Of a stretch of DNA of 64,000 nt, positions 2,903 through 42,105 are shown piece by piece. The position numbers were made by a program, and so were the translations under genes. The stretch is from Lepidodermella squamata. Lineage: Eukaryota > Animalia > Gastrotricha. Position 1 is the stretch's first letter. Each line of letters starts with the position of its first letter. A model generated the notes under the pieces. The model was not told the DNA's origin. It ran no database searches and saw only the letters and a list, made by a program, of their open reading frames with translations. The stretch covers positions 1,302,001 through 1,366,000 of the forward strand of contig JBLDXI010000021.1 of assembly GCA_047495785.1 (NCBI GenBank). The letters run 5' to 3'.

Positions 2903-3835
2903 TTATTTCTCCCCGACGCTGATGAGGTGTTGGTGGGCGTTGTGATCGGCAATATTTGTTTTGTAGAAAGACCTTTCGTTATCGGCATTATCGTTCTCTT
3001 TCCCGATCGATACGCGTGGAAGCTTGTGCGAGAATTCGAGCGCCAATTTGGCGAAAGTGAGCAAAAAATTAGCTACGACGAGGTTTACCAAGTTACGAGG
3101 CAGGAATCCCTGAAAACGTTAAAATTTTCAGCCTTCAAGTTGGAAGAGAATTTTCCTGATTTCTTACCTTAAGGTCCACATTGTATATGTATGTCCATAA
3201 ACATTTGTTTGGATCATCGGGTAACTGCTTCCAAGACATGCCAAGTGGTAGGTTTTCGCCCCTGCATGAACGGATAAATAACGAACTGCATCACACGATG
3301 CCTCACTTGCACACATACCTAACAATTTTTTTCGAAGGAGGGTGGAAATCGTACTTTGGAGGGTCGGCTACAGACGCGCCATACTGGACGAAGAGGCCTT
3401 TCGAGATTTCACGGTAGAAGCGGATCGTGTAAAACTCTCGGTCGCTGATGCCGGATTGACCCTTCGCAATCGTGTAAGCTACATTCCAATCATCGCCCCG
3501 CTCAAGAATCTAGGGAAAAATCGTAATAAAATACCATGCGGGACGAAATCAAGCAAAAACAGTACTTTATCCATCGCAAGGTTAGGAAACCAGTCGCATT
3601 TCCCTTCCTGAACTATTGCTCTGAAAGCAGTTTCAGCCGAGCAGTTCATGACGATCTGGCTTTTCCAGATTGTGCCGTATTTCGGAACATGGCCTTTAAA
3701 AACGACGCCCTCGTGGATGTCGGTTCCGCAGTGTCTTTCCCAGTTTACGTCATCCGTGCCTGCCAGCCAGCCAACAGTAATCTCAGCAAGGCTCTTCCTA
3801 AGTCGCTCAACCTCAGACTTCTGCATTGCAGCCAT
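2903..3835 (-). CDS. START-domain lipid-transfer protein, paralog 1 (3 introns)
   Basis: Spliced product contains W..., ISDREF, IVR|GENLPLG, YNVDLK|GFLPRNLVN and the C-terminal lid helix typical of START domains. Confidence 0.85.
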
Positions 3836-4591
3836 GAACGTAATATAACTATGTGTATTGAAGCCTAAAAAAACGGGAAATTTGTTGTCACCTTACAACT
3901 GGACAATTAGTATTTTCTAGAAATAAAATTCTATAGCTATAGGATAGCGAGTATTAAGGCGAGTTTTATTCATCTAGCGAAGCGCAGCCGTATCCAAAGT
4001 AAATAGTGGGAGTGGCCCCACTGACGATATACGAACGAACTGGAAAAAAAATCCGCATTGAAGCACCGATTAATCGGGGTGGCACCGTTTTTGCCTCTTG
4101 CCAACCCGCCGTTATCGCCGTTTCGTTCACGGCACCCACACCGCAAAAGTTGTCTGTCCGGTGATGAGATCAAAAAGATTGCCGTGACGAGATGATATAT
4201 ATTTCACAATTTCGTCAGAAAGTGACGTTTTCACCACACCGGTTCTCCGTAAAAAAATACGCAAATAGATTAATTTTTATTATTTTATTATTTTTCAATC
4301 AAATAATAAAAACAATCAGCCTGATGGCTAATTTTTTTCTCAGGTACACTTTCCTTGTGTGCTTCTCAAACAAATTTTACATCAAGAGCCTCATTAGTGA
4401 GATTTTACATTATACCCACTGAGTCATCGCACTTGAACTTTACTTTGTGACAAACTTGAATTATTTCGTTCAAAGAAATAAGCTGAAATTCGATAACCTC
4501 GAAACAAAAGAGGTGATGACAGATTCGTTGTACGCCGATAACGGTGTCGTGAATAATTATAAAATATATCAACAAAGTTGGAGGAATAAAT

Positions 4592-5610
4592 TTAGTGCTG
4601 AGGCTTCTTCTTTTTATTCGATTTGGCCGTTGCAGGTCTCGGTGAGGTGGACGGAGTCGTTGGAATTATTTTCGTCTCTTCAGCTAGCCGCCGAGCGTAG
4701 TCTTGGCAGGCTTTTACGTGTTGTAGTAAAAAAGAACTGGCGGCGAGATTCATTATCGACTTCAGAATGTATCCCTAAAATAGCATAGATAGAAATGACG
4801 ATCTAACTTGTTTAAATTCCGAAATACCTTAAGGTCGACGTTATAGATCAACACTGAGTGGCACCGGATTTTGCCGTTTTCTTGAACAGGGGTGAAAGAC
4901 CAGCCCTGGGGTAAATATTCGCCTCGTATGCAGTCGCTAATAGGCACCTGTTTGTAGCAGTCGTTCGGAACTGATTGAGCTAGCGTGAAAAGCGTCTCGA
5001 CTTCGCCAGGATGGCTGCCTTGCGGTGACTTAGCCGCAACTTTTCCCGCAAAGCGGATGAACACAAAATCGCGATCACTAACACCGGTAACGCCGTGTAT
5101 GCGTTGTTGTAGCACGCTGTGATCTTCACCGCTCGCCAATAAATGCGATTCTTTCAGTTTTGGAATCCATGAAATATCAAGGTCTTGAGTAACTGATTTG
5201 AAAATTAGAGCTGGCGGGCAATCTAGCATGAACTAAAATTAAACCAATTAATTCTCTGATTTTGAATTATTTAATTAAAATTTTACCTCAACTTTCCAAA
5301 CAGTTCCCATATCGTCAATATTGCTGTTGTAAATTCTTCCAGTCTCCAACGTTTTCCCAGTTTGATGCTCCCATTTGTTATCATCGGTTCCGAGAAGAAT
5401 CGGCAAGGCTACTTTGTGTAAATTGTTCCGCAAACATTCGACCTCATTCGAGCTCAAAACTCGGGGTGAAATCATTTCCGGTTCATCGGCATCGCTTACG
5501 GGCTCGTCGTTCTGGTTGTGCTCGGCTAAGGATTTGTTCTGCTTATGATTGTGGTGATGCTTGTGATGGTTGGCGTTGTTATGCTTGTGTGCCGTCTTTG
5601 TCGAAGACAT
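4592..5610 (-). CDS. START-domain protein, paralog 2 (2 introns), with His-rich N-terminal and polybasic C-terminal extensions
   Basis: GTVWKVE, VSDRDFVFIRF, IRGEYLPQG, YNVDLK|GYILKSIMN; ends ...SNKKKKPQH*. Confidence 0.85.
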
Positions 5611-7622
5611 TTTAATTAATTAGGTAAAATCACTCGGTTTAACTGATTGTTCTTAAAGCTGCTAGAAAAAATGAAACATACAGTGAAAAAAGGGAGCCTT
5701 TATAACGTGTAGCATTAACGTGTAACAAGACAGAACTTGACCGTGCGGAAAACAAAAAAATGTTGGCAACACGAGTGACGAAACACCTAGATCCTGCAGC
5801 GTGGTGTTATATAAATTGAAAGGGTGGTATAGGACGTCGTAGGAAGCGGCATGACATGACGAAATATAATAATATAAGTAAAACACTTCTGTGGTAAAAT
5901 AATTGAAAAAAATTCTCTCATGCTAACACAACGCCATGCTACCCAAAATACACAATTGAACCGAAAATGAGTAATACAAAAGCTACTATTCTCCCACAAA
6001 AAATTGACGGTTGGAGCCTGCATGCTGCAGCCCCGGCAGTAGCGTGCCGTTTCGTTCATACACTTGACAATTATATATCATTACAAGCACGACTGAACAT
6101 GATGATGCGTGGAAAGCATTATATATTACGAAGAATTCACTACTGTTGGCATGTATTATGAAGCCAAGAGCTAATATTATATATATTATATTGTATGATT
6201 TATATAGTGAATTCACAGAATAAAAAAGTGGCGTGATCCTTTGCACGGACGCGCGCTTTTTTATTTACCAGTGCTTTTCCAATATAATTGTTGCGCAGAA
6301 TGATGTAATAATAGCAAATAAAGCGCATTTTTTGCGCATTTACTCTTAGTAGTAAAAAACGCGCCATATGCTATATGAGCGTAGAATGAGTCACGCGCAA
6401 CCACCTTGCCGTAAGACTGCTAATGGCAAATGGCACGATGAGCCCCACCGATTTTTTCGTCACATGCCGGCATATCAAAAATTGGCGTCCTGTTGTGGAA
6501 ACAAATTCACACGTTTTTGACCGCCTAAAGGTGACCGTTTTAGGTTATCGACCTGTCGATGCCGCCGCGGCGTACAATAAAAGATAGAGAACACTGTCTC
6601 GTGGTAACGAGCCATAAAAAGTTAATCCCTAGTTCAAAGACACCTTAAATTTTGGCTAAAAGACCCGGCTTCAATTATTTATAACTGCGCATGCGGACAC
6701 ATTTTGACCTAAGGTTCAGTGAAAAATAAAGAAATATTATTGTTGTGTCTTTGAAACCAGTGAAAATACGAATATGATAATGGCGGCTGTAAAAATCAGA
6801 CGCGACGCCTGCATAAATTGCATTTTTATAAGATACATATAAGACCCAGGGCGCATCCCTTGTCGATGAAAAACACGGCGTCACGCGCTGTTTGCCCGAA
6901 TAAAGACAGTCGGGTCACAATAATGCTGAGTGCGAAATAAAAGCCTTGGCTATTAAAATTCGACATATAATCGAGTTTAGTGGTCTCAAGGATTTTTTGA
7001 ATGAACCCGTTGATAACTAAATAGCTCTTAATACCTTTAGCTTAGCGCTATTAATTTTTCTATTGATTTGTTGAACTCGTTTCACGACGTGCGCGCATTA
7101 GTCGAACAGGAAATTGATGGCATCAAGGAAATTCGATAAAGAAGCGTTTCAAAGAATCCATAAATTTTGCATAAACACATTTACGGCCTTGCGTAAGAGC
7201 AAGAGATAGAGGGTGTATTTTGGGAGTTTGCATCAATTAATTATTCGTTGCGCAATAAATTCTTCGAAGTAATCTGAGGTGAGGAATCTTCCTAATAGAT
7301 TTTCAAATAGTTTATAGTGCTAGTGGCTAGTGCTTCCACGTCAACCTTAATCTTTTGAGGTGGATGGGAGCTTCCTAGAGGTCTGAATTAAAAAAATTGA
7401 AAATCTAAAGTGCGGTTCACAAACTCGTGTGTAAAATATGTACACATTCATGATTCATTGTTCATTTTTTACGCGCAAAATTCATCTCTTGCAAAAACGG
7501 TCGAGATGCCATTTGAATCATGAACGATGAACGAAACCCGCTCACAAATTATTTGTCATAATAATTCATGATTCAAATAGCGATTTTTTTGTGTGCGAAT
7601 TAGCCAAAATAAAAAAAACTAA

Positions 7623-7691
7623 GCCACCACCGAGCACTGAACCCAGAATACTGATTTAGCACGGTTGGAGCTAAACCACTATGCTAGTAGC
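7623..7691 (-). ncRNA. Degenerate tRNA-like Pol III cassette in the left arm of the foldback element
   Basis: Minus strand reads GCTACTAGCATAGTGG (A-box-like) ... GGGTTCAGTGCTC (B-box-like) ... TGGTGGC, which closes an acceptor-like stem, followed by an oligo-T run. Confidence 0.45.
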
Positions 7692-8126
7692 AAACTTCGG
7701 TGGTTGAGTTCGTTTTTGTCATCATATACCATTTTGCTGTTGACTTGCAGTATCAGAGCTGCAAAACTAGCGCGAATTAAATTTTCGCATTGTTTAGACT
7801 ACATTGCCCGCTTTAACGCTAGCAATTACACCAAATTTTGGATTCATAGCAATAGCCGATAAATCATCGCCAAAAATGACTGAATCGAATAGTTTGAACC
7901 CCAATGATTTATACTTCTGAAAAATGTATCGGTTTGGAATAATTAATCGGCCCAATCAGAGTGCTCTAGCCGAAGATAAAGGTCAAATGATGTTATTCAT
8001 GGAATGGATTTTATGGAAAATAATCGAATTGTTAACGAATTTTTCCAATAGCTCTCGGAAAATCTAAGTTAACAGTTAACAACGAGAATAGGAGATAATG
8101 ACGCTAACGCTGTAATCAACAAAAAC

Positions 8127-8207
8127 GCACTGGTGACACAGTGGGTTTAACACGTACTATCATGCCCAGTGTCGTGGGTTCTGCGCCCTGCGGGCGCACT
8201 CCTTTTT
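8127..8207 (+). ncRNA. Degenerate tRNA-like Pol III cassette in the right arm of the foldback element
   Basis: GCACTGGTGACACAGTGG (A-box-like) ... GTGGGTTCTGCGCCC (T-arm/B-box-like) ... GGGCGCA, then CCTTTTT. Confidence 0.45.
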
Positions 8208-8710
8208 AGATCTAAATCGGGCACATAAAAAAATGGCTAAACAGCTTCTTGAATCATGAATTATGGTGAGCGGGGTTCGTTCATCGTTCATGATTCAAGT
8301 GAGCCTGCAAAAAATCTTTTGCATCATTCATGTGGAAAACACGAGTTTGTGAATCGCCCTTACATCTAGGAATTCAAGAATCGTCCCTCTTTAAGTCAAC
8401 ACACTTTTTACCATTTGCTGGAAAATACAGAAACTATGCCAAACCCCCTTTTTTCACTTGTCACCTGCAAAAATGCTGGTTTCGAAATTCCAATTCCCCT
8501 AATCCCAATATCCACCAATGTAAAGTAGGCCAGTATAAAAGCACTCAGTAGGAAAATTTCGTAATTTGCATATCAATATATTTTTAATTTCATAGAGCAA
8601 TAAAATTCAACACTTGATTCGAAATGAGCACAAAACACGGAAATCAACAATTAGATTGCGAAAATATATAATCCAGATGCTAAAGTATAGTATTAATCTA
8701 GCAGTCGAGT

Positions 8711-9594
8711 TCATTTTTTGCCGGCAGCCGTAACTTCTGCAGTTTTCGCAATAATAGCCTTGGCGAAATCGATCAAAAACGTAGTGGTGACCATTCGAAT
8801 GACTTTCTTCGGCAATAAACCCTGGATCGGCACAAGATTATTAACACTGCTTTTTCAAATTAAGGTGGAAGCGGTACCTTAAGATCCAAATTGTTGAGCC
8901 ATACAATAACACAGCGATTAGGATCAGTTGGATGAGGTCGCACCAGGCAACCTGAGGGCATGTACTCGCCTCGAATGCACTTGGGTCGTTTCGGGCAGTC
9001 AGGGTGAACTATCGACTCTGTAAGCTCATAAATAGAGCCATCGCCCATGATTTGCCGGAATCTCAAGTTCACAAAGTCTCTGAAATAAATAAATTATTGG
9101 CTTCCTGCCGAGTTCGAATGATGATATTAACCTGTCATCTACAGCCGGAATACCAGCTGATAACGTGTAGCTGATTTCCCAACTTTCATCAGGTGCTTCC
9201 TCCACTAATCTGTACTCGCCAACATGGGGCGCCCAATCGGTGGGTTTAAGAGTATTTATGAAAATGTGTCGGAATTGTTCAACACTGATAGCCAGTTCGC
9301 ACTATAAATGAGTAGAAGTATGTTGGAGCTAATTTTAAAAGGGCAATCTAACCTCCAGCTTCCATATTATTCCCATCTTTTTGTGCTCTCCACGATAAAC
9401 AAGGCCGGTTGTAGTTTTATCCTTACCACCTTTTAGCTTCCAGGTTTTATCTGTTGTCTCGTCGAAACCCGTGAGGAGAGGCCAAACAATTTCATGAAGC
9501 CGGCGCCGAGTATCATCCAGCTTAAAAAATATATATTAATAGTCTCGAAAAATCAGTGCTCATTTCATACCTCCTGATCCGTTTTTAGAGGCAT
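8711..9594 (-). CDS. START-domain protein, paralog 3 (4 introns)
   Basis: MPLKTDQE|LDD..., GIIWKLE|, VDDR|DFVNLRF, CIRGEYMPSG, NNLDLK|GLLPKKVI...AAGKK*. Confidence 0.85.
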
Positions 9595-9711
9595 TTTGCA
9601 GTTGAGGTTAGCTCGGCAGTGAAATCGTCCAAATTAGTTAACTATAAAAAATACCCTATGGACTTGCTGAAAAGTATTGTCGGGTTAGATAACGAGGGCG
9701 GCTTATCATTT

Positions 9712-11788
9712 GGCATGTGAAGGATTTTATTTGTACCACCATCCGTCATAGACGCTCTCGGCGCGTTGACTCGAGCCTCATAACGAGTAAAATGTATCAA
9801 AACAATCATGTATGTAGTGTAAAAATATATAAAATGAGGGTAGAAGTGGTATCATGCCATTCGTTGCTGTCTATTAGAATTCGCAATGTAAAAACGTTCA
9901 ATGTAGTTGGAGCGTTATATTAAAATCCATTGGCGGCTATCAATTGTCGCGGCTGAGGAAGCTACTGCGTTTCGAAGGTGCCACGCAGGGCATTTGCTTT
10001 CAAGCACTTGTCGCGCTGTTTCATTGGCAGGCTGTATTTCCGCGACGAACTTCAGGTATTCAGCCACCTCAAGGCCGCATGCCATGGAGCGAGAGCCATA
10101 GTTCTTAAGGGCGTTTTCAAAAACATCATCAATAGCTTCGACGCGGGCATAGGCAATGACGTCGATAGGGTCGGTCTCATAGGGCAAGTCAAGGAGGGCT
10201 CGAAGGGCGTGGGCCTGTAGATCAAGAAGGTGCTGTTTTGTCGAGGGAGGCTGGCAGTAAAACGCGGGCGCCGCGTAAATAATAACAGATTCTAAAAGCG
10301 TCCTATAAAAAGACAAACACAGCCGCTTTTCGAGGACATGGCGCCGCGCCAGGCCATACAAGGCACCGACGCGGGGCTTAAGTTTAGCCGCGATACAATT
10401 AACATGATAGTTCCACGACAGTTGTGGCGTTAAGTTAAGGCCCAAATATCGCACCTTAGTCACTTGTGGAATGGGTTGCCCATAGAGCTGAAGTAGCACA
10501 GTTGGCGGTGTTCCACCGTAATGTCCAAAGATCATCGCCTCACATTTGCAAGGGTTAAGTTTCAAGCGCCAACGATTGCACCATTTTTCAGTCGCCGTGA
10601 GGCGTCGCTGGAGCCGCTTGACACATGAGGCGTAGTCTTTCCCGTATGCCCAATTAATCGCGTCGTCGGCGAAGGTCGCCTTCCCAACTCGGCGCATGCC
10701 GTCGTCCGGGGCGAAAGACTTTGGCTGCATTTCTGCCGCGTAAAAAATAAAAAGTAGAGGAGACAAAGGCGACCCCTGTGGTACGCCGCAAAAAATATTT
10801 TTACTATCGCTGAGTTCGGATCCTACTCTTACCCGGAATGACCTGTCTTTTAAGAAGTCGGAAATCCATCTAACAATTGAAGTAGGAACACCAGACTGTT
10901 TTAGTTTGTACCTAAGACCATCGTGCCAGATGCAGTCGAAAGCGGCTTTGAAATCCAACAGAAGAGCAACTAATTTATATTTTTTAGACAGGGCTATACC
11001 AATATCACTGATGAAAAGGAAAATTGCATCGATGGTGGACCTAAGTGAGCGAAAACCGAATTGGTGGGCAGGCAGAAGTTTGTGTTTTTCGATAAAATAG
11101 TATAGAAATTTAGCAACAATAATTTCCAAACCTTTGGCCAGCGTTGGCAGGAGCGACACGGGCCTATATGACTCTGGGAGACGCGAATCTTTCCCTTCTT
11201 TCAAAATAGGTACAATAATAGCAATTTTCCAAACTAACGGTACGTAGCCGCTGTTCAAACTCAACTTATAGAGACATCGCAGGTGTTTAACCAGAGGCGA
11301 GCCCCCGCGCTTTAGAAGCACGTTTGAAACGTTATCATGCCCAGGGGCCTTCCACTTCAAACCTTTGAGCATTTGACGCACCGCCCATTTGGGCACATCA
11401 ACTGACTGGTCCGTCGGTATCGTCTCGAGCGGCTTCAGGCTGTCGTCGTTCGCCACCTCAGAGCTGACCTGCTGCCAGAATTTAACATCTTCTGCCCTGT
11501 TTGAAGTGACAGGCGGTCCTTCGGCGACTTTGCCGAACGTTTCCGCTAAGAGCTCGGCCTTACCCCTGTCTTCTAAAATATTCGTACCTTGTGCATTGCG
11601 AAGAGTGGCAATTTTCCTCTGGCGGCGTCGACGTGACAGCTTCGAATTGACGGCCTGCCATGCTGACCTGCTTTTACTTTCATTAAAAAGCTTCGCGATT
11701 TTCCTGAGAAATTTTTCGCACTCGGCGATTTTTTGATTCAGCACTAGGCGCCTGATGATATTGCTCAGCGTATTGATTTCGGCTTTGA
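9712..11788 (-). mobile_element. 5'-truncated non-LTR retrotransposon (Jockey/I-like) with an uninterrupted reverse-transcriptase ORF (9915-11744)
   Basis: KAPGHD, YRPVSLL, QFGFR, LLDFKAAFD, GVPQGSPLSPLLF, FADD, YLG motifs. AATAAA near the 3' end (~9725). Candidate 7-bp TSD ATCATTT at 9705-9711 and 11789-11795. Confidence 0.92.
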
Positions 11789-12510
11789 ATCATTTCTATC
11801 ATTTCGCTTCGAGTCTCACAGGCTCGAGTTGGTAGAAATTGAGATAAAGCGAGCTGGGGGCTGTTTTACGCTATAATCTAAACAATATAGGGATTTAGAA
11901 TTTTTTATTTTAGCATCTGCTAGTTTCCCTCGCAATAATAATTATCACAGAAGCTGTGCGAGAATCGCGCAGCTGCGCGGTCGGTCGATGCCTTATATTC
12001 TACGGAAATAATGCAATAAAATAACGCCCTGATTTGCATCGCTAGTAGTTTTTTTTTATGGAATATGGCATCGGCTAAACAAATAAACCGGCAGTTTCCA
12101 TTTCGCTAAAATTAGTCTCGCCGTGTAGCTATTAATTAGGCGGTAGCGTGACGTCGATATAATATGCGGGTCGACGAAAACGAAGCGCGGACAGAATAAA
12201 ACTATTACACTGACTATTAAAACTCGAAAGAGACATATTACGGACGTGCAAAAGAGATGGCCTTGATTTTATTGCGATTAAATGACAAATCTCGTCGCGG
12301 CAATCTTTTTCGTGCCGAAAATCGATTATCCTGTAATCTCCGCCACAAATTTCGGAAGAAGAACAATAGAAAAATTGAATTGAAAAATACGACATTAAAA
12401 CTATTTAGTCCAGTGATTTTTATCGCACAAACTTTGTCAATCAAATAAGAAATTCAATATAATATTCTCGAAATTACACCGTGAATTAGATTTTATTATT
12501 TTCGTTTCGT

Positions 12511-13506
12511 TTATTTTCGTTCAGCGGCCAATTTTTTGCACTTGTTGACGCACGCAGTTCCAAATTCTGTCATGAAGGTTGCCATAACCTGTACGCATTT
12601 TAAGATAAATAGTTTCAATTTCCATCTCCGCAATGAAAACACGTTCTTACCATGTTGACAAGCGACCGTGGCATGAATCCCTATTAAACGCATAAAAATA
12701 TTATTGGATCAATTGGTCGCTCCAATTTCATTACCTTCATGTCAGTGTTGCTTATCCAATAAAACTCACTTCGATTAGGATTGTCTTTCAACGGTCTGAG
12801 GATTGCACCACTAGGCAGATCCTCGCCCCTGATGCAAATCGAATTAGGGTCAACAATATTTAAAATAGAGCTTTAACCTGACGCAACCGGATTCTTTTGT
12901 GGTTGGGGCTTTTGGATGATCTGTCTTGACAGTCAGCAATAAGTACCCGCCGTCATCCAGCTTTTTCTGAAAATTGATGCTGACGAAGTCACTGGGAAAT
13001 GGATTATAAGAAATATTTTCCGGCTTCATTTGTTTATAGTTTCCAACCGATTTGAAGCTCCACCGAACCCTCCAGTGACTGAATACGAAACCTGCCAATT
13101 TTCAGATTTCTCAAGAAACTCGTATCGTTGAATAGGAGGAACCCAATCGACAAGGTCCCCTTGCCTCACAATCCGATTGACGTACTCTTCAGGTGAAACG
13201 TCGATAATCAACTAAATAGAGAAAGTGACGCTAAATGACGTGAAAAATAGCATATCGCAAAGCCACCAACTTCAAGTTTCCAGACAGTGCCAATCTTTGG
13301 ATGAGATCCCTTGTAAACGAGGCCTGTGGTCTCTCGATCAGAGCCCCCTTTCAATTCCCAAGTTTTATTCTCGAAATCGCTGGCCATTGGCCATACCGTT
13401 GCCTCAAGATCGGTAAAAATGTCTTGAATCTGTACAAATGTGGGGAAAATTGCGGTAGTACAAATTTGGTGAAATAACCCACTTCTTTCTCGGTTTTGTA
13501 TGACAT
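12511..13506 (-). CDS. START-domain protein, paralog 4 (6 introns)
   Basis: MSYKTEKE|IQDIF..., ASNR|DFVSINF, CVR|GEDLPSG, NTDMK|GFMPRSLVNM|VMATFMTEFG...AERK*. Confidence 0.85.
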
Positions 13507-14078
13507 GATCTTAATAGGTGCAAGTAATTGCAAATTTAGGTATGATTAGTAGAACTGAGTTTTGGCTTTGTTCCCGTTATATCTTTTAACGTGGTCATGA
13601 ATAAGCGAGCCATGAGATAACGATTGCGGTAATACGCGATAAAGAATCACCGCCGTTCAGTAAGCCGATAGGTTCCCATTTAGATTTTTTCGACCTAATA
13701 ATTAGAACATACGATTTAACTATTTTCTTTTTTCTCTTTTGAAGTTTTAACAGGCAATCAAATTTTCCAAAGCGGGAGAGCATTTGCTACATTCGTCCGC
13801 GAATTTGAATATTTACCTGAGAAATTCCGGAAAAAAGAGGGTTCGGTATCAATCGATATTCTACCAAGTTTTACCATTAATATCATAACTTTTAGGATTT
13901 CTTTCAAATTTCAAGCGGTTTCGAGCTGGCATTTCGAATTTTTGGAACCTTCATAGCAAGAACATCGCCTCCCATTTTAGACTTTCTGCTCCCATGATGC
14001 CTATTTTCGTCGATTGAGTTTTTCTGGGACACATTGCTAACACATAACTAGTAGTGTTAAAGTCTTTTATGGTGTTTT

Positions 14079-15066
14079 TTATTTTCGTTCAGCAGCCAAT
14101 ATTTTGCACTTTTTCACGCACGCAGTTCCAAACTCCGTCATGAAAGTTGACATTCCCTGAAATATTTTTGAAACAATTATTGAAAAATTTGTCCGTTGCT
14201 AACATAATGGAACACGTTACCAAGTTAATGAGCGACCGTGGCATGAATCCCTATAATACACATAAAAAAAAGATAATTGGACCAATTAGTCACGCCAATG
14301 TCATTACCTTCATGTCAGTGTTGCTTACCCAATAAAACTCGCTACGATTAGGATTGTCTTTCAACGGTCTGAGGATTCTCCGCCCTGTAAAAATCAAATT
14401 AGGGTCAAAAGTCAAAAATATTTAAACCAGAGTTTTCACCTGACGCAGCCGGACTCTTTTGTGGTTGGGGCTTTTGGATGATCTGTCTTAACAATTAGCA
14501 ATAAGAACCCACCGTCATCCAACTTTTTCTGAAATTCGATGCTGACAAAATCGCTGGGAAATAGATGATAAGGAGTATTTTCTGCTGAAGGCTTCGTTTC
14601 CTGATTTTTACAAACCGATTTGAGACTCCAGGGAACCCTCCAGTAATTGAATAGGAAACCTGCCAATTTGCAGATTTCTCAAGAAACTCGTATCGTTGGA
14701 TATGAGGAATCCAGCCAACAAGATCCCCTTGCTTAACAATCTTATCGACGTACTCCTCTGGTGAAACATCGATGATTAACTTGATAAAGAAAATGGCGTG
14801 GAACGTCGACAAAATGGCTTCAATAAACAACAAACTTCCAGTTTCCAGACAGTGCCGATCTTAGGATGAGATCCCTTGTAAACGAGGCCTGTAGTCTCTC
14901 GATCAGAGCCCCCTTTCAATTCCCAAGTTTTATTCTCGAAATCGCTGGCCATCGGCCATACTGTAGCTTCAAGATCGGTGAAGATTTCTTGAATCTGAAA
15001 AATATGGGAAAATTAATTGTAAAATTCAGTGTATTAGCCCACTTCTTTCTCCGCTTTGTATGGCAT
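14079..15066 (-). pseudogene. START-domain paralog 5, frameshifted by a net 17-nt deletion at the start of exon 5
   Basis: Close copy of paralogs 4 and 6, but exon 5 starts GGCGGAGAATCCTC instead of GGGCGAGGATCTGCCTAGTGGTGCAATCCTC. This removes GExLPSG and gives a premature TAA at 14348-14350. Confidence 0.75.
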
Positions 15067-15501
15067 GATGGTATATGGGATGGTAATTGCAAATTTAGGT
15101 TTTGATTTGTAGAGCTGCTTTGCTCCCGTAATCCGTGATATCTTTTAACGTATGGTCATGAATAACCTAGCTATGATAACCGTAACGGTAATACGCGATA
15201 AGGAATCATCACCGCTGTTCAGTAAGCTGACAGGGCCCATTTTATATATTTTGACTAAATAATTGGAACAAAAGATTGAATCTCGAGCGGCTGAATTTAT
15301 TTCGGCTCAAAACCTCCTTCAGTTCATTTCTTTAAGAAATATCAAAATATTAAAATATTACCGAATTTTTCGGACGGTGATCATGCTCGCAGAAAGGCTG
15401 GTGAATCATTGTTTATTATTTATTCAGTCGCTCTCTGTAGCGAAGCCCATGCGCGGCTGCTATTTTTATTGCTAATGAATTTAATTGTTGGGGCCCGAGA
15501 C

Positions 15502-16073
15502 GAAATTCGGCCCGAACGCGTTCGGGTCAGCCCGTACGCGGTCGGGTAACGGCACTTTACCACTCCGCGCTCGGGCCGGTTTAAAATATGCCCGTATGCG
15601 GCGTTTACTGTAAATTTAATATTTATTCGAGAGAATCACGCTTCACCGCACACGGGCCGGCCAAGGTGCCAGCCCGAGCACGGCGGAGAACAATGGGATC
15701 CAGCGCTATTGTTCAGCGCCGTACTTGGGCCGCCGGGCTCGGGCCTCTGGAATCGGGTCGTCGGGCTTGGGTCGCCGGGCTCGGGTCATCCTACAACCAA
15801 CGCCCACCCCGACAATTTTACCAAGTCCCGGCCCGAGCCCGGCGGCCCGAGTACGGCGCTGAACAATAGCGCTGGATCCCATTGTTCTCCGCCGTGCTCG
15901 GGCTGGCACCTTGGCCGGCCCGTGTGCGGTGAAGCGTGATTCTCTCGAATAAATACTAAATTTACAGTAAACGTCGCATACGGGCATGTTTTAAAACGGC
16001 CCGAGCGCGGAGCGGCAAATCAATGCTATCCTTCTGCGTACGGGCCGGCCGGAGCTCGTACGGGCCGAGTTTT
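15502..16073. repeat. GC-rich long inverted repeat (foldback/MITE-like), arms ~245 bp, spacer ~85 bp
   Basis: 15563-15745 is almost the exact reverse complement of 15829-16012, and the two mirror ORFs in the track are near-identical. Repeated GCCCGAG/CTCGGGC motifs. Confidence 0.85.
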
Positions 16074-16378
16074 AGCGGTAACACCGGAAGAGCCGGAAGA
16101 AATCACAGAAAAATCCGATTGCAACTGATTCAGTAATAAAATTGACAATCCAACCCAAATTATCTAAGTTCTCCGGCTTTTTTATCACTGCTGACAGCTA
16201 CTCAATTGCCAGTTTAACGACAATCCGAATTTTTCCTGCCATTATTAAAAAGAGTATCGCCTCTCATTTGGTCTTTCTGATCCCTTTTACGCATATTTTC
16301 TTGGATTGCGTTTTAATCATGGGGCACGATGCTTTTACCTATAATCGATAATTAGAGTTCAAGCGTTTTTTAATGTTT

Positions 16379-17361
16379 TTATTTTCGTTCGGCAGCCATT
16401 TTTTTGCACTTGTTCACACACGCAGTTCCAAACTCCGTCATGAAAGTTGACATCACCTGTAATTTTTTGAAGCAATTATATAATTATTGCTAACATAATG
16501 GAACACGTTACCAAGTTAATGAGCGACCGTGGCATGAATCCCTATTAAATGCATAAATGGATTATTGGACCAATTAGTCACACCCAAGTCATTACCTTCA
16601 TGTCAGTGTTGTTCACCCAATAAAACTCGCTTCGATTAGGATCGTCTTTCAAGGGTCTGATGATCGCACCACTAGGCAAATACTCGCCTCTGCAAATCAA
16701 GTTAAATGGCAAATATATGAACTAGAGTCGGCTGACAAACCTGACACAACCGGACTCTTTTGCAGTTGGAGCTTTCGGGTGATCTGTCTTGATTGTCAAC
16801 AGCAAGTAAGCCCCGCCCTCGAGCTTTTTCTGAAAGTTGATGCTGACAAAGTCGCTGGAGAGAAGAATTTGAAGTAATGCCAGATCAAAAAGTGATTCCT
16901 CAATAAATTTACCGGCTGGAAACTCCGGCAAAGCCCTCCGTAACAGAATAAGTCACTTGCCAATTTTCAGACTTTTCGAGAAACTCGTATCGCTTGACGT
17001 GGGGAACCCAGTCGAGGAGCTCACCTTGTCTCACAAAACGCTCGACGTACTCATCGGGTGAAATGTCTAATACCAGCTATAAAAATGGATTGGAAATAAA
17101 AAATCGCCGATCAGGGAAGCTAACCTCAAGTTTCCAGACAGTGCCGATCTTAGGATGAGATCCCTTGTAAACGAGGCCAGAATTCTCGCGATCAGAACCG
17201 CCCTTCAACTGCCAAGTTTTATTCTCGAAATCGCTCGCCATCGGCCATACTGTAGCTTCAAGATCCGTGAGAATGTCTTGAATCTGTAAAAATATGTGCA
17301 TGCTATGATAGCCTAATTTCGCAGCAAATTAGCCCACCTCTTTCTCTGTTTTGTAAGGCAT
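16379..17361 (-). CDS. START-domain protein, paralog 6 (6 introns, intact)
   Basis: MPYKTEKE|IQDIL..., VSSR|DFVSINF, CVR|GEYLPSG, NTDMK|GFMPRSLINL|VMSTFMTEFG...AERK*. Confidence 0.88.
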
Positions 17362-18214
17362 GATCTGTTATAGTGGACTAGTATGTTAATTTATATACGT
17401 ATGCTTTTTTGAGTGAAATATAGCTATGTAACCGCTTTGGCTAGCTGTGTACTAATAGTCGTCCCGTTATATCTTCTAACGCGGTCATAAATTAACCAGC
17501 CTTGATAACGGTTGCGTTGATACGCGATAAAAAATTACACTGCGCAAAAAGTCCGGGCATCAGCCCTTGATTCGCATGGGTCGTGAATTGCGAAAAATTA
17601 CCATGATCTTGATCTTGAAGTTCATACAGTTGTCTATGAATGAGCCGGAAGTGTGCGCCACTGAAATTTGTCCGGATCATGTCGTGTCAAAGTAAACCGG
17701 ACTTATATGGGTGGAGTCTTGTGACTAATACAGCAAAAGGTCAGAGTAATCTTTGGGGGTTCCATTCGCAAACATTTATTGGAGAGAGAACTATGGTGAA
17801 CAAAAAATGAATGAATCAGTTTTTTAAATCGTATCATATATACCAGGTTTGCCCGTTTTCAAGCTCATTTATGCATAACCAGACTCCGGACTTCTGAACC
17901 TTAAAACAGGTCGAGAATGGTCTGAAATGAGGGAATACTCTATGGGTAGTCATGGGGAAATATTATCTCCCCTCCCGATCTAAAACGGAGATTTAGAGAG
18001 TGACCGCCAACCTAGTTACAATTAGTTTGAATCTCGGGCGGCCGCAGCGTTTTACTCTGTGTCGAAAACATTATAAATTCTTTGATAAAATGTATGGCAA
18101 TGTTGAAAAATATCTCAATATCGTCTTCCATATTAAGGTTATTTTGTCCCCGGACAGTGATCTCAAATTTTATTGTTTGGCAAATCATTGTTCCATTCAG
18201 TCGCCGTAATGAAG

Positions 18215-19161
18215 CTAGGGCGATGTTCGCGCGGCTGCCAACTTTTTCGCCTTGGCTGTGACAGCACTGCCGAATTCGAGCATGAAACCAGATAGTACCA
18301 TGTTGATAACAGAGCGAGGTATGAAGCCCTGAAATAGGTAAATTTTGCATATAAAATTGAATATAGAAAACGGAAAACAAAACGCACTTTCATGTCAGTA
18401 TTGCTAATCCAATGCATTGTACTCTTGTTCGGATCTCCTTCAACAGGAATCAGATAGCTAGCCGAAGGCAAATATTCACCCCTAAAATAAAAAAATATAT
18501 AAATAGGTATCAATAATTTATTGTTAGATTTTACCTAACACAGCCAGAAGTTTTCGGTTGAGCTGGATGGTCAGTCGCAACAGTGAGAGCCTCAAGACTG
18601 CCGTTCTCGGTCAGTTTTATAAAATTCACACTTAGGAAATCCCTGATGAAGATTTAACATGAATAAATCACAATCAACATAGTGAAAAATGTATCTTACC
18701 GAGCGGAAACTGGACCTATCCGGTTAGCGTAGGACCAAGTCACCTCCCAATCATTATTCGGACTGCGCTCTACAACCTTGTAATCGGAAAGATTAGGCAC
18801 CCAGCCAACGAGGTCGTTTGAAAAAATAATCTTCTCCAAATACTCCTTAGGCGATATGTCGATATTAACCTATTTACGAATTTATTGAGTGATATTGCTG
18901 ATTGTCCGTGACAGTGATTGAACTTACCACAAGCTTCCACATAGTGCCAAGTTTTTCGTGTTCAGCGCGATAAACCAGACCTGTTGTATTGATATCGGTT
19001 CCGCTTTTGAGTGTCCACTTTTTATTTTCGACATCACTAACCCATGGCCAAATAGTATCATAGGTATCCTTGCGGATCTTATCAAGCTAAAATTGAAGGC
19101 ATAGGAAATTAAAAGTATCATTTAGGAAAATACTTACTTCCTCTGCGGTTTTGTAGGGCAT
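18215..19161 (-). CDS. START-domain protein, paralog 7 (5 introns)
   Basis: MPYKTAEE|LDKIRK..., GPVSAR|DFLSVNF, CVR|GEYLPSA, NTDMK|GFIPRSVINMVLSGFMLEFG...TSP*. Confidence 0.88.
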
Positions 19162-37019: not shown

Positions 37020-37556
37020 TCAAAGCGCCGTCATTTCGTTATTATTGATGCTGATTTCGATTATTCTAGTTGTTGTTTGAACTTTCGTTACAGGAGGCGG
37101 TGATTTAGTCGCACTTTCAGTCTCCGTGCCTTCCTCGTCGTCCTCCTCAGCCGCACTATCATCCGAAGCAATGTCTCTCGTGATTTTAAGGGGTTGTTGA
37201 GTAACTGTATCGCAATTGATTCCACGCCCGGTATTCTTATCTGGTGATGTAAGGGCAGGTGATTTCTTATTCTTGGACATCGCTATAGCGCGATCTGTCC
37301 TCGAATCGAGCAGGCTGTCTACCACTGTCGCTACACCGACGGTTACAACAAAAAACAGCCCGCCGCAAGCATTCGCGAGTAGCATCATACCTAGACCTAT
37401 AAGAAATCGCCGTAAATTTTGAGAAAGTAACGAAAATATTCACTTACTGATTTCCACAGTCATAGCGAACTCAGTGTTGGTAAAAAAATATCTATAAGGA
37501 GAAACCTGAACTCGAGTATAATGACGAAAGCGATCACTGTAATACCGGATGAAGGC
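37020..37556 (-). CDS. Last two exons of a small orphan membrane protein (5' exon not resolved)
   Basis: An exon ending ...FTNTEFAMTVEI|gtaagt splices in frame to SLGMMLLANACGGLFFVVTVGVATVV (hydrophobic helix), followed by an acidic Ser/Thr-rich tail. Confidence 0.45.
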
Positions 37557-38519
37557 TGTTTATTGTATGCAAACACTACTTTAGTGAATAGTCAGTCGAT
37601 TTATATAGAAATCGTTCTATTGTTCCACAGCGGATGTAAAAAAATCTATCATGCCCATCACCAAACAATTCTCGCCGAAGATGATGATGGGTATGGTTGC
37701 GATAGAAGCAACACTCCGATGTTTGCGGATATATATTATATAAGATATTTGGAGGGGAAACTCTGACTGCTATGTCTATTCATTCTATTATTAAACGCGT
37801 TGTTTTACCGCGGCACTGTAATAGTGTTCCGAGGCCGCGATCTCAGCGGCGAGCCTGTCTAAGCTCGTCGGTTGTACTGCTGTTCGCTATATGCTATTTA
37901 TGTTTATTTTTGTAATAATTTTTTACTCTCACCCAGTGATGTACATGCCATTCTTTGGTTTTTGCGCGCAGTTTTGTGTGCGCGTGCGCTCTGGGAAATG
38001 GCCGCGAACGAGAGACACGCGATGGATGTTGTATCATCATTATGGTGCGGCGCATGTTCTTTGTTATTACATTAGCGACATCGTGGACAACAAAAAGTCC
38101 GCCTTAAATCCGGTGCCGCGCCGTCACCTATAATATAACATACTATCATATAGCTGATTTATTCATTCGTCCCCAATTTTTTTTTCGGTCACTCTTCTTA
38201 TTGCTGTCTTCTTGATGAAATTCCCCATCGCCCTTAATAATAACGCCTGTTTTTTGTTGACAAAGAATAGCCCCAGGGTGCAATATCCTGTAGATGTGTT
38301 TTCGTATTTATTACGGTTCTCACGCTCTAAATATAGCCAATGGCGGAAAGCAATACGAAAACGCAAGCGATAACTGACAAGCGACTCAATTAACACCTTG
38401 TATTGTTTTGACACGAATTCGTTCTGAAGCCGAAGAGACGACGTCTCTCTTCATTCTATAAACTGAGTACAGATTATATTGATTTTTCAGGGTTTAAATT
38501 TACGTTTTTTTTTATAAAA

Positions 38520-39450
38520 ATGCCTTACAAATCAGAAGCCGAGGTTGGTTATTTTTTATGTTCGATTTCGCAATTTTTCTTATAAATTTTTTAGTTGGAG
38601 GAGTTGCGGAAAAACCTCTACGACACCGTGTGGCCTCTGGTCGGCGACATTGAGAATAAAAACTGGAAGCTGAAAGCTGGCACTGATCGCGAAACGACCG
38701 GCCTCGTGTACAAAAGCCATCACGAGACCTTGGGAACCCAATGGAAGGTCGAGGTACATAATTTTCCTGAATTTTGATAGCTTTTTGTAACATTATTTTG
38801 TCAATGTGACAGGCCGTTTTGGACATATCACCTGGGCAATACTTCGAAACTATATTGATGAAGCCTGAAATGACCGATTGGATACCGAATTTAGCCGATT
38901 ACAAGGTGATCGAGCGGAGTCCGAACAGAGACTGGGAGGTGACGTATTCCCACGCGTCAAAAATGGGACCGATTTCAGCCAGGTACCATTTTTGAAAACA
39001 TTGTTCTGATTCTACAGTTCGCCCTTCCAGAGATTTTGTAAATATCAATTTCTACAAGACCCTCGAAGGAGGCCAACAGCTGGGTATAATCGCGGAAACT
39101 GAACATCCTGACATGCCGGATAAATCAAGCGAAGGAATAGTTCGGTTTGTATTTCCTTAAATTATGTGAAATAAGGCTATTTATACGCTGTTTTAGCGGC
39201 CAATATTTACCATCGGCTAATTACCTTGTGCCACTGGAAGGGAATCCGAACAAGTGTACTTTTTACTGGCTAAATAATGTCGATCTCAAGGCATGAAGTT
39301 TCAAATCTGATTACCAACTTATTGAATTTTTACCAAATAATTTAGGGATATTTACCGAGACAACTGATCAACCTGGCAATGAGCAGCGTCATGCTCGATT
39401 TCGCTGCAGCTCTGATTGGCAAAGCCAAGAAAATCAACTCGGCGAATTGA
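38520..39450 (+). CDS. START-domain protein, paralog 8 (5 introns, last one GC-AG)
   Basis: MPYKSEAE|LEELRK..., GPISAR|DFVNINF, IVR|GQYLPSA, NNVDLK|GYLPRQLIN...NSAN*. Confidence 0.88.
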
Positions 39451-39805
39451 TATATCAAAGCCTGGAAGTAAACCACTGCCATATCCTTTTAATTTCAACC
39501 TTGCCAGTGCCAATTTAAACAAGCTCCAGTGAAACCGTGTGACAATGATTAGCTAGACATTTTTGTAAAGTAGAATTAGGCTTTTATTAATGGCTTGATA
39601 TTGTCCATCCAGCGGGAACAGTTTTTCGGAAATGAGGTCGATAATAGCTCAATGTAGATGAATTATGAATTCATGGCCACATTGAATAGAACATTCACAG
39701 TGCGTAATCTTCTCTAAAGCGGTGACCTGTATATATATATGAATAAATTTGTAAGAGAATCGCAAACCGTCTTGTCAATCAGGTTTATATACTTTCCATT
39801 CTGAA

Positions 39806-40733
39806 ATGGCTTTCAAATCAGACGCTGAGGTTCGATCAATCTTTCAAATTGAGAACTCCAAATTATTTTCTTTAAAGTTGGCAGATATTCGAAACAGCCT
39901 GTATGAAATTATTTGGCCGTTGGCTAGCGATACAGAAAATAAAACTCATTGGTCTCACAAATCTGGCAGCAACCGCGAGAAGACGGGAATCGCGTATAAG
40001 GGACATCACGATAAGATCGGCACGACTTGGAAAATTGAGGTGGGTGATGTTTGTATTTCAAGGGCTGAGGTTTGATCGTTATAATTTTCAAGGTAATTAT
40101 CGATATCACTCCGAAACAATTTTTCGAGAAAATTATCCTTGCCAATGACATGTCGTGGGTGCCGAATCTCAAGCAATACAGCGTAGTCGATAGGGGAGCG
40201 AAGAATGATTGGGCAGTTATTTACAATTTCACGTCAAATATTGGCCCGGTTTCAGCCAGGTAATTCCAGGTAATTTACAATTTGAGCTGAAAAATGGTCT
40301 ATTCACAGGGATTTCGTGAACATTAATTTCCACTATCCTGATATTGGAGAGGGCTCCTGTTTGATAACAACAATCGGAATCGAACATCCCAACGCACCTC
40401 CAGTAGCTAAAAACGTGGTCAGGTTCGAGTCTTAAAATCCCATTCATTTTTTAATTTAAGGCAATTATATTGAAGAGGCCAGTATCTGCCATCGGCTTGT
40501 TACTTGAGGCCACACCCCGAAGATCCTAAGCGATCAGTCCTTCATTGGATAAGTAATGTCGATATGAAAGTAAGTTTGTTGTACAAGTTATTGTTGAGAC
40601 TTTACCGGCATGATTTCCCTATAAACAGGGCCTTATACCTAAAAGCGTTGTAAATCTCGCGATATCGACTTTCATGTTGGAGTTTGGGGAGGCTATTATA
40701 GCCAAAGCTAAGCAAATGTCGGCCGAACAGTAA
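39806..40733 (+). CDS. START-domain protein, paralog 9 (5 introns)
   Basis: MAFKSDAE|LADIRN..., GPVSAR|DFVNINF, VVR|GQYLPSA, SNVDMK|GLIPKSVVN...AEQ*. Confidence 0.88.
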
Positions 40734-41175
40734 CAGCGGGAAAAACTATAAATGCGCTTTTCAATTCAAGAACTATTCCCTTGTCGCTTTTGAAATCGAA
40801 AATAATGAACCATTAATGAACCTTTGCTGTTGTGCCTTCTATATTTTCCTTGTCCATATTGTAAATAAAAAATAAACCCTTTCTGGTTCGACGTGAGAAT
40901 AAAATTGGTCGAATCATGGTTAAACTCTTTGGAAAACATATATTTTATGAATGCTGTTAAAAAAAGTACTATTGTTAATGTAAAAGGCGGCCATCATTCA
41001 GAAATAATTCATGAATTGTCGGCTTCGCGCGGTCAAAAAATGACATCGTAGAATGCCAATTTTTGACCGTCCATTGCGGCTGTATAAAAAAGCCGAGATC
41101 AGAAGAAGGACCTCGCAGTTTCATCTCGGTTTTTCAGAGAAATCCACCAATTTTAAACAGAACCAAGCACTAGCC

Positions 41176-42105
41176 ATGGCTTTCAAATCATCCCAAGAGG
41201 TAAATTTTTCACGCGATAAGATGAGTGTAAGTGTAATCTCCATATGTCTAGCTTGCTAATATCAGAGACAATTTGATGCAAGTAATCTGGCCGCTGGTGA
41301 CCGACTTCGAGAACAGAACGTTTTGGTCGAGAAAAGACGGCAAGGACGTTGAAACGACTGGCATTGTTTACAGCGGCGATCACGAAAAATTAGGAACAAT
41401 TTGGAAAACGGAGGTAAAAATCTTCGAATATTCTTAAGTTCTAGAGTCAGCAAAAGAGTTTTTAAGGTTGTCATCGATGTCTCGCCTGATCAGTTTTTTC
41501 AAAGTGTCTATCTTGCAAATGATATGAGCTGGATTCCGAACACAAGCAACAGGGTTGAAATCGATAGGAGCCCTGAGAATGATTGGAATGTTACCTATTT
41601 CTGCTCGCCGGCTCTCAATGCAGTATCAGGCAGGTAAGACTTTTCCGTCAATTCGTGTAGCTAGTTTCTATGCTTGCAAATTTGCCAGAGATTTTGTCAA
41701 CGTCAATTTTTTCTACCCACCGATGAACGACGGTGCAAGGCTCGTGACTACAGTTGCTATCGAACATCCAAAAGCTCCGCCTGTCACGAAGGATTTAGTT
41801 AGGTTCGGCCGGATTTTCATACTTTTTATATCCTTCTTAGTTCTTGAATTTCAGAGGCGAGTATAGGCCATCTGCTTGCTTCATAAGGCCGTATCCTAGT
41901 GACCCGAGACGTAGCCTTTTGAGTTGGATAAGTAATGTTGACCTCAAGGTACCAGTGACCTCACCAACATCGTGAAAGTAGCTTAAAGATTGTTTTTCAG
42001 GGAATTATTCCGAAATTCATGGTGAATATGTCGCTTTCCAGCTTCATGCTCGAGTTTGGAGAGGCAGCTATTAAAAAGTCGAGGCAAATCGCATCAGGGC
42101 GATAG
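41176..42105 (+). CDS. START-domain protein, paralog 10 (5 introns)
   Basis: MAFKSSQE|LANIRD..., AVSGR|DFVNVNF, LVR|GEYRPSA, SNVDLK|GIIPKFMVN...SGR*. Confidence 0.88.

Follow-up and report, generated by a model that had tools for sequence, protein, structure and literature searches.

Does the run of START-only genes at this locus constitute a genuine lipid-carrier family particular to one lineage, and what might its members carry? Well-studied animals have few START-only carriers: three in mammals and one Start1-type gene in insects. A tblastn search of the window (the whole 64-kb stretch of DNA analyzed here) with two exon translations yielded ten co-linear sets of matches, and spliced protein-to-DNA alignment converted all ten into complete open reading frame models. 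The DNA is of animal and not of human origin. These ten START-only genes, each complete and multi-exon, occupy 2903-42105, with the c1 stop at the lower end and the c10 stop at the upper, exactly the limits given by an earlier sequence-only reading. Seven lie on the minus strand (c1-c7, 2903-19161), and the plus strand carries the other three (c8-c10, 38520-42105; Table 1). Retroelement and foldback insertions are located between copies.

Table 1. Positions and exon structures of the START family genes.
Gene	Product	Position	Strand	Exons	Basis and remarks
c1	START-only, 253 aa	2903..3835	-	4: 3835-3566, 3509-3319, 3261-3168, 3109-2903	spliced model; introns all GT-AG; C-terminal extension
c2	START, 303 aa	4592..5610	-	3: 5610-5287, 5232-4828, 4774-4592	spliced model; His-rich N-terminal extension, Lys-rich C-terminal tail; in-frame 45-nt segment within exon 2
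c3	START-only, 224 aa	8711..9594	-	5: 9594-9571, 9520-9353, 9301-9132, 9079-8878, 8821-8711	spliced model
c4	START-only, 220 aa	12511..13506	-	7: 13506-13483, 13429-13271, 13211-13048, 12991-12878, 12828-12735, 12680-12651, 12588-12511	spliced model
c5	START-like, 209 aa as modelled	14079..15066	-	7	c4/c5/c6 DNA alignment and spliced model
c6	START-only, 220 aa	16379..17361	-	7: 17361-17338, 17283-17125, 17076-16913, 16854-16741, 16689-16596, 16541-16512, 16456-16379	spliced model
c7	START-only, 222 aa	18215..19161	-	6: 19161-19138, 19086-18928, 18869-18700, 18642-18535, 18481-18388, 18328-18215	spliced model
c8	START-only, 221 aa	38520..39450	+	6: 38520-38543, 38595-38753, 38813-38982, 39031-39144, 39197-39290, 39346-39450	spliced model; last intron GC-AG
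c9	START-only, 221 aa	39806..40733	+	6: 39806-39829, 39878-40039, 40093-40259, 40309-40422, 40476-40569, 40629-40733	spliced model
c10	START-only, 221 aa	41176..42105	+	6: 41176-41199, 41252-41413, 41467-41633, 41689-41802, 41855-41948, 42001-42105	spliced model
Further member		C21:1.121 Mb			same contig, ~165-180 kb from the window
Further member		C21:1.139 Mb			same contig, ~165-180 kb from the window
Further member		C9:1.308 Mb			other contig

Splice models were built from homology and consensus splice sites and were used for alignment (carried out exon by exon for the family), identity, dN/dS and trees; database and fold searches used single exons or naturally contiguous open reading frames. 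Introns measured 48-71 nt in all ten genes, were of the GT-AG type except for the one GC-AG intron of c8, and occupy positions common to family members. The first exon comprises 8 codons of the form M[PA][YFL]K[TS]..E in c3-c10 and 8-9 codons over c3-c13, where it is hydrophilic and runs straight into the START domain, while c1 begins inside the domain exon and c2 carries its His-rich extension ahead of the domain. Domain-only products of 209-230 aa account for 11 of the 13 family models, c1 and c2 being the two that bear short tails; with c2 included, the products in the window span 209-303 aa instead of the ~210-270 aa estimated earlier. The motifs R(D/E)F, RG(E/Q)x(L/M/R)P and N.D(L/M/T)KG were found across the copies, in agreement with those named in the sequence-only reading (R-(D/E)F, G(E/Q)x(L/M/R)P and N.D(L/M)KG), with c5 as the exception that lacks G(E/Q)xLP. 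In phmmer searches against the whole 121-Mb genome, exon-level E-values between copies reached 1e-10 to 1e-19, so that their likeness is not due to chance.

The family comprises at least 13 genes, ten in the window and three outside, and a genome search with exon A of c7 located 12 other family loci. The canonical STARD3, STARD10, CERT and DLC genes map elsewhere, apart from the family, and a distinct MENTAL+START gene occupies a separate locus on C11. When an N-terminal exon-A profile was compared with 1.84 billion proteins, only family members were matched, namely four relatives, all on metagenome contigs. Metagenome contig L008 keeps both order and orientation (c4-7-like, c3, c2, c1). Orthologue pairs exhibited 47-68% identity (68% for c3 and P0002/m3) and a pN of 0.22-0.38, their synonymous sites being saturated, and both tails of c2 are retained in its orthologue m2.

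Evidence for the START domain came from profiles as well as from a modelled fold. Relative to the curated cut-off of 22 bits for Pfam PF01852 (START), contiguous orthologue open reading frames scored 52.2, 71.7 and 48.5 bits in matches that span 155-161 of the profile's 207 positions, and orthologue P0001 also scored above it (27.4 bits). The c1 orthologue on L008 gave 48.5 bits together with a STARD3 match at 1.8e-10, exon 4 of c3 gave 44.5 bits with a STARD5 match at 1.7e-6, and exon 2 of c2 gave 27.8 bits (E 2e-6); a six-frame Pfam START search of the genome had matches on c3 and c4. As modelled by AF2, the c3 orthologue (exons 1-D; pLDDT 87.8, pTM 0.83) adopts the helix-grip alpha/beta START fold, with MLN64/STARD3, StAR, BmCBP, STARD4 and STARD5 as top Foldseek matches (TM 0.75-0.81) and START domains in 40 of the top 40 (TM 0.65-0.81). 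Exon E, the C-terminal helix outside this model, can be aligned with the corresponding helix of StAR and MLN64, and an ESM Atlas search returned generic START clusters. No START protein in the PDB was matched by profiles of exon A and of exon B or by exon 2 of c2 alone. In a word-index search, exon 2 of c2 had no match and the c3-orthologue open reading frame retrieved only itself, while the genome's own STARD3 open reading frame retrieved one metagenome protein and one Anopheles protein at 25% identity. Neither a signal peptide nor a membrane segment, MENTAL or other targeting domain or mitochondrial presequence was found in the family proteins. The Pfam START matches of exons and orthologue open reading frames and the modelled fold thus bear out the predicted assignment as minimal START proteins.

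Cavity positions were mapped through HMMER alignment to MLN64 and StAR plus the family alignment, with residue roles taken from published work (PMC8472075, PMC10232897). The polar cavity residues of STARD1/STARD3 are Arg351, an acidic residue at 332 (Glu169 in StAR) and Gln421 (PMC8472075). This conserved polar set is not retained by the family. The Arg351 equivalent was kept only in c1, c2, c3, m1 and m3, with Asn in c4-c11 except for Glu in c5; the position equivalent to 332/169 is S, T, N, Q or F in every member and acidic in none; and Met or Leu takes the place of Gln421, apart from two orthologues on L008 that have V and W there. The polar residues thought to hold the sterol hydroxyl are therefore mostly absent, and a binding mode of the STARD1/3 type for sterols should not be assumed. 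Pocket columns, as mapped from STARD3, were no more variable than the rest (1.78 versus 1.73 bits; 41% of random column sets reached at least that value), and no sign of diversification centred on the pocket was seen.

In the tree, where the outgroups were few and only of the STARD3 and STARD10 types, the family forms one clade with moderate support (76/96). This clade and the exon A common to all members uphold the proposal of a lineage-specific family, and the locus is a lineage-specific expansion of a well-known domain. Because synteny and orthologue pairs are kept in a deeply diverged relative, known only from metagenome contigs, most paralogues are ancient and were present in the common ancestor. 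Synonymous saturation made dN/dS unusable for every orthologue pair and the majority of paralogue pairs; among c4, c5 and c6 it was 0.07-0.12, with 0.07 for c4 versus c6. The family's copies have been kept under purifying selection, which is strong for the young c4/c5/c6. The terms "diversifying" and "birth and death" in the sequence-only reading are overstated, with paralogues that are mostly ancient and low dN/dS in the young copies; turnover amounts to one triplication (c4-c6) and one copy, c5, that is probably decaying.

The similarity of c4, c5 and c6 is also the sole point in favor of regarding the copies as artefacts of assembly, through haplotypes left uncollapsed or contigs duplicated, or the locus as a chance neighbourhood of different STARD subfamilies. 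Although these three are the closest copies, "near-identical" was too strong a description, since they share 81-89% protein and ~84% DNA identity, their introns have diverged and their dS of 0.43-1.03 argues that they are not assembly duplicates, the outcome that would have overturned the earlier proposal; all other pairs are synonymously saturated. With exon A, intron positions and a single clade common to all copies, and the canonical STARD3, STARD10, CERT and DLC genes located elsewhere, an artefact or a chance neighbourhood is barely credible. A mostly dead array, the decaying pseudogene cluster of past duplications, could be read from c5, from the GC donor of c8 and from the insertions between copies. 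In c5, alignment of c4/c5/c6 DNA revealed an 18-nt deletion that takes out the normal exon D acceptor and the RGEDLPSGAIL strand, so that the reading frame is kept only through an alternative acceptor; the dN/dS of its branch was ~0.37 versus ~0.05 for c4 (by arithmetic on pairwise distances), and c5 is probably defective or decaying. Against extending this to the whole array stand full open reading frames in ten out of ten genes with conserved exon structure, dN/dS of ~0.1 in the youngest copies and four lineages whose orthologues are intact in a relative that has reached synonymous saturation, which makes a dead cluster highly improbable.

We consider it likely, instead, that the products of the ten genes and of the at least three elsewhere make up a family restricted to one lineage: soluble lipid-binding proteins that consist of a single START (helix-grip) domain and belong to the StAR/STARD3-like branch of the START superfamily. 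The family grew by tandem duplication, mostly before the split from the deeply diverged relative, and a recent triplication gave rise to c4/c5/c6. By analogy with STARD4/5 and with the START domains of StAR/STARD3, each protein would most likely act as a cytosolic shuttle that picks up one hydrophobic molecule at one membrane and releases it at another, and the cavity differences may turn the paralogues into a carrier set whose members differ in part in the ligands or membranes they serve. Sterols are the probable ligand class, with carotenoid-like molecules as a possibility. A whole-genome six-frame, loose exon-by-exon search, which is not proof of absence, did not find an oxidosqualene cyclase or a convincing squalene epoxidase; its matches were only a prenyltransferase beta subunit and a COQ6-like FAD monooxygenase. 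Transport of a carotenoid or other isoprenoid pigment in place of a sterol, as by the silkworm carotenoid-binding protein or lutein-binding STARD3, is suggested by the BmCBP structures among the top fold matches of the c3-orthologue model (ranks 6-12), by BmCBP among the sequence matches of the c4-7-type orthologue and by the extensive loss of the sterol-hydroxyl residues. STARD3-type START domains do bind lutein (PMC8472075, PMC4973302). However, the scores for StAR/STARD3/STARD5 surpass those for the carotenoid-binding protein (1e-10 to 1e-16 versus ~3e-3), and we regard a pigment-carrying family as unlikely.

A more speculative extension of the preferred soluble-carrier reading, which we hold to be doubtful, would be a private system of several carriers that handles dietary lipids in an apparently sterol-auxotrophic micro-animal of an essentially unsampled lineage, with c1-c3 (Arg) and c4-c11 (Asn) binding different lipid classes, for example sterols versus carotenoid-like or other isoprenoids. 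On this view c2, which shares its His-rich head and polybasic tail with its orthologue, might represent a membrane-anchored or metal-responsive START protein without a described counterpart. The expansion is real, old and conserved, and with such a well-known domain the general surprise is modest. A 13-gene, anciently kept, syntenic set would nevertheless provide a natural experiment in re-tuning one helix-grip cavity; its distinct cavity residues, together with the lack of a detectable oxidosqualene cyclase, could show how dietary lipids are distributed in sterol-auxotrophic invertebrates. The family also marks a fast-evolving animal lineage otherwise seen only in metagenomes.

Literature searches for a described animal START-only expansion and for the accessions of the metagenome samples found nothing relevant, and the scallop "StAR-like-3" is an ordinary MENTAL+START STARD3. 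By sequence, StAR and STARD3 are the nearest solved relatives with STARD5 close behind: among PDB sequences the c4-7-type orthologue matched StAR (2e-16) and then STARD3 (1e-12), the c3-type orthologue matched STARD5 (1.8e-8) and then STARD3 and StAR (~1e-5), and STARD4 and STARD6 scored far below StAR/STARD3 for the c1-type and c4-7-type lineages. Alignment with STARD3/MLN64 and StAR is co-linear across nearly the whole domain, with the motifs RDFV, VRGE..P and N.DLKG.P in common. In contrast to these proteins, the family has neither the MENTAL domain of STARD3 nor the mitochondrial presequence of StAR, its N-terminal half is family-specific and too divergent for profile detection, and instead of being one gene it is a tandem set of 13 members. 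BmCBP of Bombyx mori, a STARD3-branch START domain from an invertebrate and a strong fold match, carries a non-sterol isoprenoid, but its sequence match is weak and it is a single gene derived from Start1. The analogy with STARD4/5/6 drawn in the sequence-only reading applies to the START-only architecture (~210-225 aa, no targeting signal), and STARD5 is both the best PDB match of the c3 lineage and a close fold match of the c3-orthologue model (TM 0.81). It does not clearly extend to ancestry, as the best PDB matches were mostly StAR/STARD3; the three vertebrate genes are dispersed, whereas the family described here is arranged in tandem.

The gene models, searches and trees described here show a START-only family of 13 members that is largely tandem and, as judged from its sequences, ancient, constrained and part of the StAR/STARD3 branch. 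Searching the window with three exon translations (tblastn) returned ten co-linear match sets, seven at 2.9-19.1 kb on the minus strand and the other three at 38.6-42.0 kb on the plus strand. These were modelled with a spliced protein-to-DNA aligner written for this analysis (GT-AG introns in all phases, a frameshift penalty and cross-copy references), and the final models, c1 to c10, were put together after junction inspection. Each of the ten is a complete ORF (209-303 aa) with introns of 48-71 nt (GT-AG save one), and their total span is exactly 2903-42105, so that the ten START paralogues proposed by the sequence-only reading were recovered within the same limits. The motifs it had named, R(D/E)F, RG(E/Q)x(L/M/R)P and N.D(L/M)KG, occur in the models as well, the last straddling the D/E splice junction, but c2, at 303 aa, lies beyond its length range. 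Genes c3-c10 open with a common first exon of 8 codons (M[PA][YFL]K[TS]..E), followed by exons A to E, and agree in five intron positions; c4-c6 carry one additional intron within the last exon, and c1 and c2 have fewer introns than c3-c10. Pairwise protein identity between window copies is 27-89%.

Exon queries against the whole genome (121 Mb, 151 contigs; window C21:1302001-1366000) recovered every window copy and three more loci, all intact when modelled (c11, 230 aa; c12, 224 aa; c13, 228 aa), two of them on the window's own contig, ~165 and ~180 kb upstream, and one on contig C9. A family of ten, as first counted, is thus correct for the window but falls short of the 13 members found genome-wide. 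A six-frame Pfam START scan placed four canonical START genes elsewhere. The MENTAL+START STARD3 orthologue among them matched just two proteins in 5.8 billion sequences, one from a metagenome (49% identity) and one from Anopheles (25%), which places the animal in a fast-evolving or essentially unsampled lineage.

The window is DNA of an animal other than human, and its introns are very short. Its ORFs are few and split into short pieces, GC is ~40-45%, and it holds metazoan genes for a vinculin-family protein, a CAT-type amino-acid permease and an SLC5 symporter, together with Ig-domain exons, a CFAP65-like protein and a polyprenyl synthetase exon. The two ORFs between the START sub-clusters are probably exons of one gene. 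The reverse-transcriptase ORFs indicate retroelement insertions into the START array, and the inverted repeat between c5 and c6 is a foldback or MITE-like element.

Coordinates of features in the window, elsewhere in the genome and on metagenome scaffold L008
Feature	Location	Strand	Remark
Polyprenyl-diphosphate synthase exon	window 14-427	+	Pfam polyprenyl_synt, E 1e-24; window opens inside this gene
RT-tail ORF	window 1544-2215	-	just downstream of c1; similar to ORF at 9915-11744; no Pfam match
START genes c1-c7	window 2903-19161	-	2-6 introns each
c2 C-terminal tail	window 4592-4680	-	Lys-rich
c2 N-terminal extension	window 5454-5610	-	His-rich; runs of H, K, N
Non-LTR reverse-transcriptase ORF	window 9915-11744	-	between c3 and c4; 609 aa; RVT_1, E 3.7e-33
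Inverted repeat, 243 nt	window 15503-15745, 15830-16072		90% complementary; 84-nt spacer; mirror-image 93-aa ORFs, both strands
ORFs of 233 and 276 aa	window 22409-25066	+	neither with a Pfam family
c8 last intron	window 39291-39345	+	GC-AG; sole non-GT donor of 45 modelled introns in the ten window genes
STARD10/PCTP-like gene	outside array		six-frame Pfam START scan
RhoGAP-START (DLC-type) gene	outside array		six-frame Pfam START scan
MENTAL+START STARD3 orthologue	L006:2384-3559 = C11	-	six-frame Pfam START scan
CERT-like gene	outside array		long N-terminal region + START; six-frame Pfam START scan
Best sterol-synthesis search matches	C21:1511477, C9:3716432, C26:1323099-1324002		
L008 START genes	L008:431-6781		1-2 introns each
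L008 counterpart of c2 extensions	L008:4355-4480		His/Lys-rich head and basic tail retained

The claim that the family is lineage-specific rests on absent relatives, and a word-index sequence search for relatives returned none; an exhaustive HMMER search was therefore run with an exon-A profile (13 sequences, 53 positions) against 1.84 billion representative proteins. Only six had E<=0.001, two of them spurious (a bacterial T9SS protein in which no stretch matched and a repeat protein). The four real matches (P0001, P0002, P0004 and P0005) came from ENA/Logan metagenome assemblies; as far as public data show, the family is restricted to this animal and to a single uncultured relative or a small number of them. 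P0002 and P0004 share one 23.8-kb scaffold, L008, where the spliced aligner found four START genes (c4-7-like, then the orthologues of c3, c2 and c1) in the order and orientation of the window minus strand. P0001 is orthologous to c12 and sits on a different scaffold from that sample. Introns are fewer in the L008 genes than in c1-c7 and lie at mini/A and A/B in the c4-7-like gene, at D/E in the c3 and c1 orthologues and at C/D in the c2 orthologue; pooled, they account for four of the positions that the window genes share, a pattern that points to ancestral positions and heavy intron loss in the L008 relative. The head and tail of c2 are kept in its deeply diverged orthologue and are thus selected features.

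Only single exons, or ORFs uninterrupted in the DNA itself, went into searches and folds, and joined models served for alignment, identity, dN/dS and trees. Pfam START scored above cut-off in c2 exon 2 (27.8 bits) and c3 exon 4 (44.5 bits), and in the PDB exon-D and exon-C+D queries matched MLN64/STARD3 and STARD5. Exon-A and exon-B profiles matched no solved protein there, so that the N-terminal half is family-specific. Since the metagenome relatives are intron-poorer, their contiguous ORFs could be used as queries of Pfam and the PDB, the best PDB sequence matches being given here. The c3 orthologue (exons 1-D) gave Pfam START 52 bits and matched STARD5 (1.8e-8), STARD3 (1e-5; residues 29-183 against 43-196) and StAR (4e-5); the c1 orthologue (exons 1-D) gave 48 bits and matched STARD3 (1.8e-10); and the c4-7-type orthologue (exons B-E) gave 72 bits and matched StAR (2e-16), STARD3 (1e-12), STARD5 and STARD6 (~1e-10) and the Bombyx carotenoid-binding protein, BmCBP (~3e-3). 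Modelled in AlphaFold2 from an eight-row alignment, the c3 orthologue (183 aa) reached pLDDT 87.8 and pTM 0.83, with MLN64, StAR, BmCBP, STARD4 and STARD5 as best Foldseek matches (TM 0.75-0.81), so that the whole protein, including its divergent N-terminal half, is predicted to be a START helix-grip domain. Pfam, PDB matches and AlphaFold2/Foldseek thus confirm the assignment as START proteins, the predicted fold being of the StAR/STARD3 (+4/5/6) branch.

Several histories of the array were weighed. Window and metagenome orthologues share 47-68% protein identity with pS 0.78-0.88 (fully saturated) and pN 0.22-0.38, indicating that the two organisms are deeply diverged and the proteins constrained. 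The ML tree (LG+C20) paired c1/m1, c2/m2 and c3/m3 (m1-m3, the L008 orthologues) as well as c12/P0001, no pair having support below 96/94, placed the L008 c4-7-like gene beside (c6,(c4,c5)) and united c7-c11 (100/99). All 18 family rows formed the single clade that had been anticipated (76/96), set against a small group of STARD3-type and STARD10-type outgroups only, without STARD4/5/6. Rapid birth and death finds no support in a family this ancient and constrained. That several copies might be assembly duplicates is excluded by c4/c5/c6, the only window copies young enough for dS measurement (dS 0.43-1.03, dN/dS 0.07-0.12); described earlier as near-identical, they have 81-89% protein and ~84% DNA identity and diverged introns. 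The sequence-only reading was right about ten genes but overlooked an 18-nt deletion in c5, which takes out the normal exon-D acceptor and the RGEDLPSGAIL strand, the reading frame being preserved solely via a downstream acceptor. A c5 branch ratio of ~0.37 vs ~0.05 for c4 (our own arithmetic, c4/c5/c6 distances split over three branches) is consistent with relaxed constraint on this deletion-bearing copy.

Adaptive diversification is likewise not supported, given the low dN/dS of this trio and pocket columns that are no more variable than the rest. Cavity positions were mapped via HMMER alignment to MLN64 and StAR and the family alignment. Reviews describe Arg351, acidic residue 332 (Glu169 in StAR) and Gln421 as shared by STARD3 and STARD1 through conservation and as probably ligand-relevant, and in STARD4 Ser136 and Ser147 sit at the STARD3 Arg351 and Ser362 positions (PMC8472075; PMC10232897). 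At the Arg351 equivalent, c1, c2, c3, m1 and m3 carry Arg, the c4-c11 group has Asn (except for Glu in c5), c12 has Val, and both c13 and m2 have Gln; position 332 is acidic in no member, Gln421 is replaced by Met or Leu, and the Ser362 equivalent is strongly variable. The sub-groups clearly differ in cavity chemistry. The 13 mapped columns (1.78 bits vs 1.73 for the whole protein, p ~0.4) show no excess variability and no statistical sign of pocket-focused diversification.

Three sterol-synthesis enzymes were sought by loose, exon-wise six-frame Pfam searches of the genome, which found no oxidosqualene cyclase (best match, a protein prenyltransferase beta subunit), no clear squalene epoxidase (best, a COQ6-like FAD monooxygenase) and one ambiguous squalene/phytoene synthase family match that could be NDUFAF6. 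The animal may be a sterol auxotroph, a lead rather than a result from so loose a search. Family members would shuttle lipids through the cytosol, their ligands differing in part. A sterol is the most likely ligand, with carotenoid-like molecules as a serious alternative. The lipid-transfer domain that has expanded here is a known one, and expansions of this sort are familiar.
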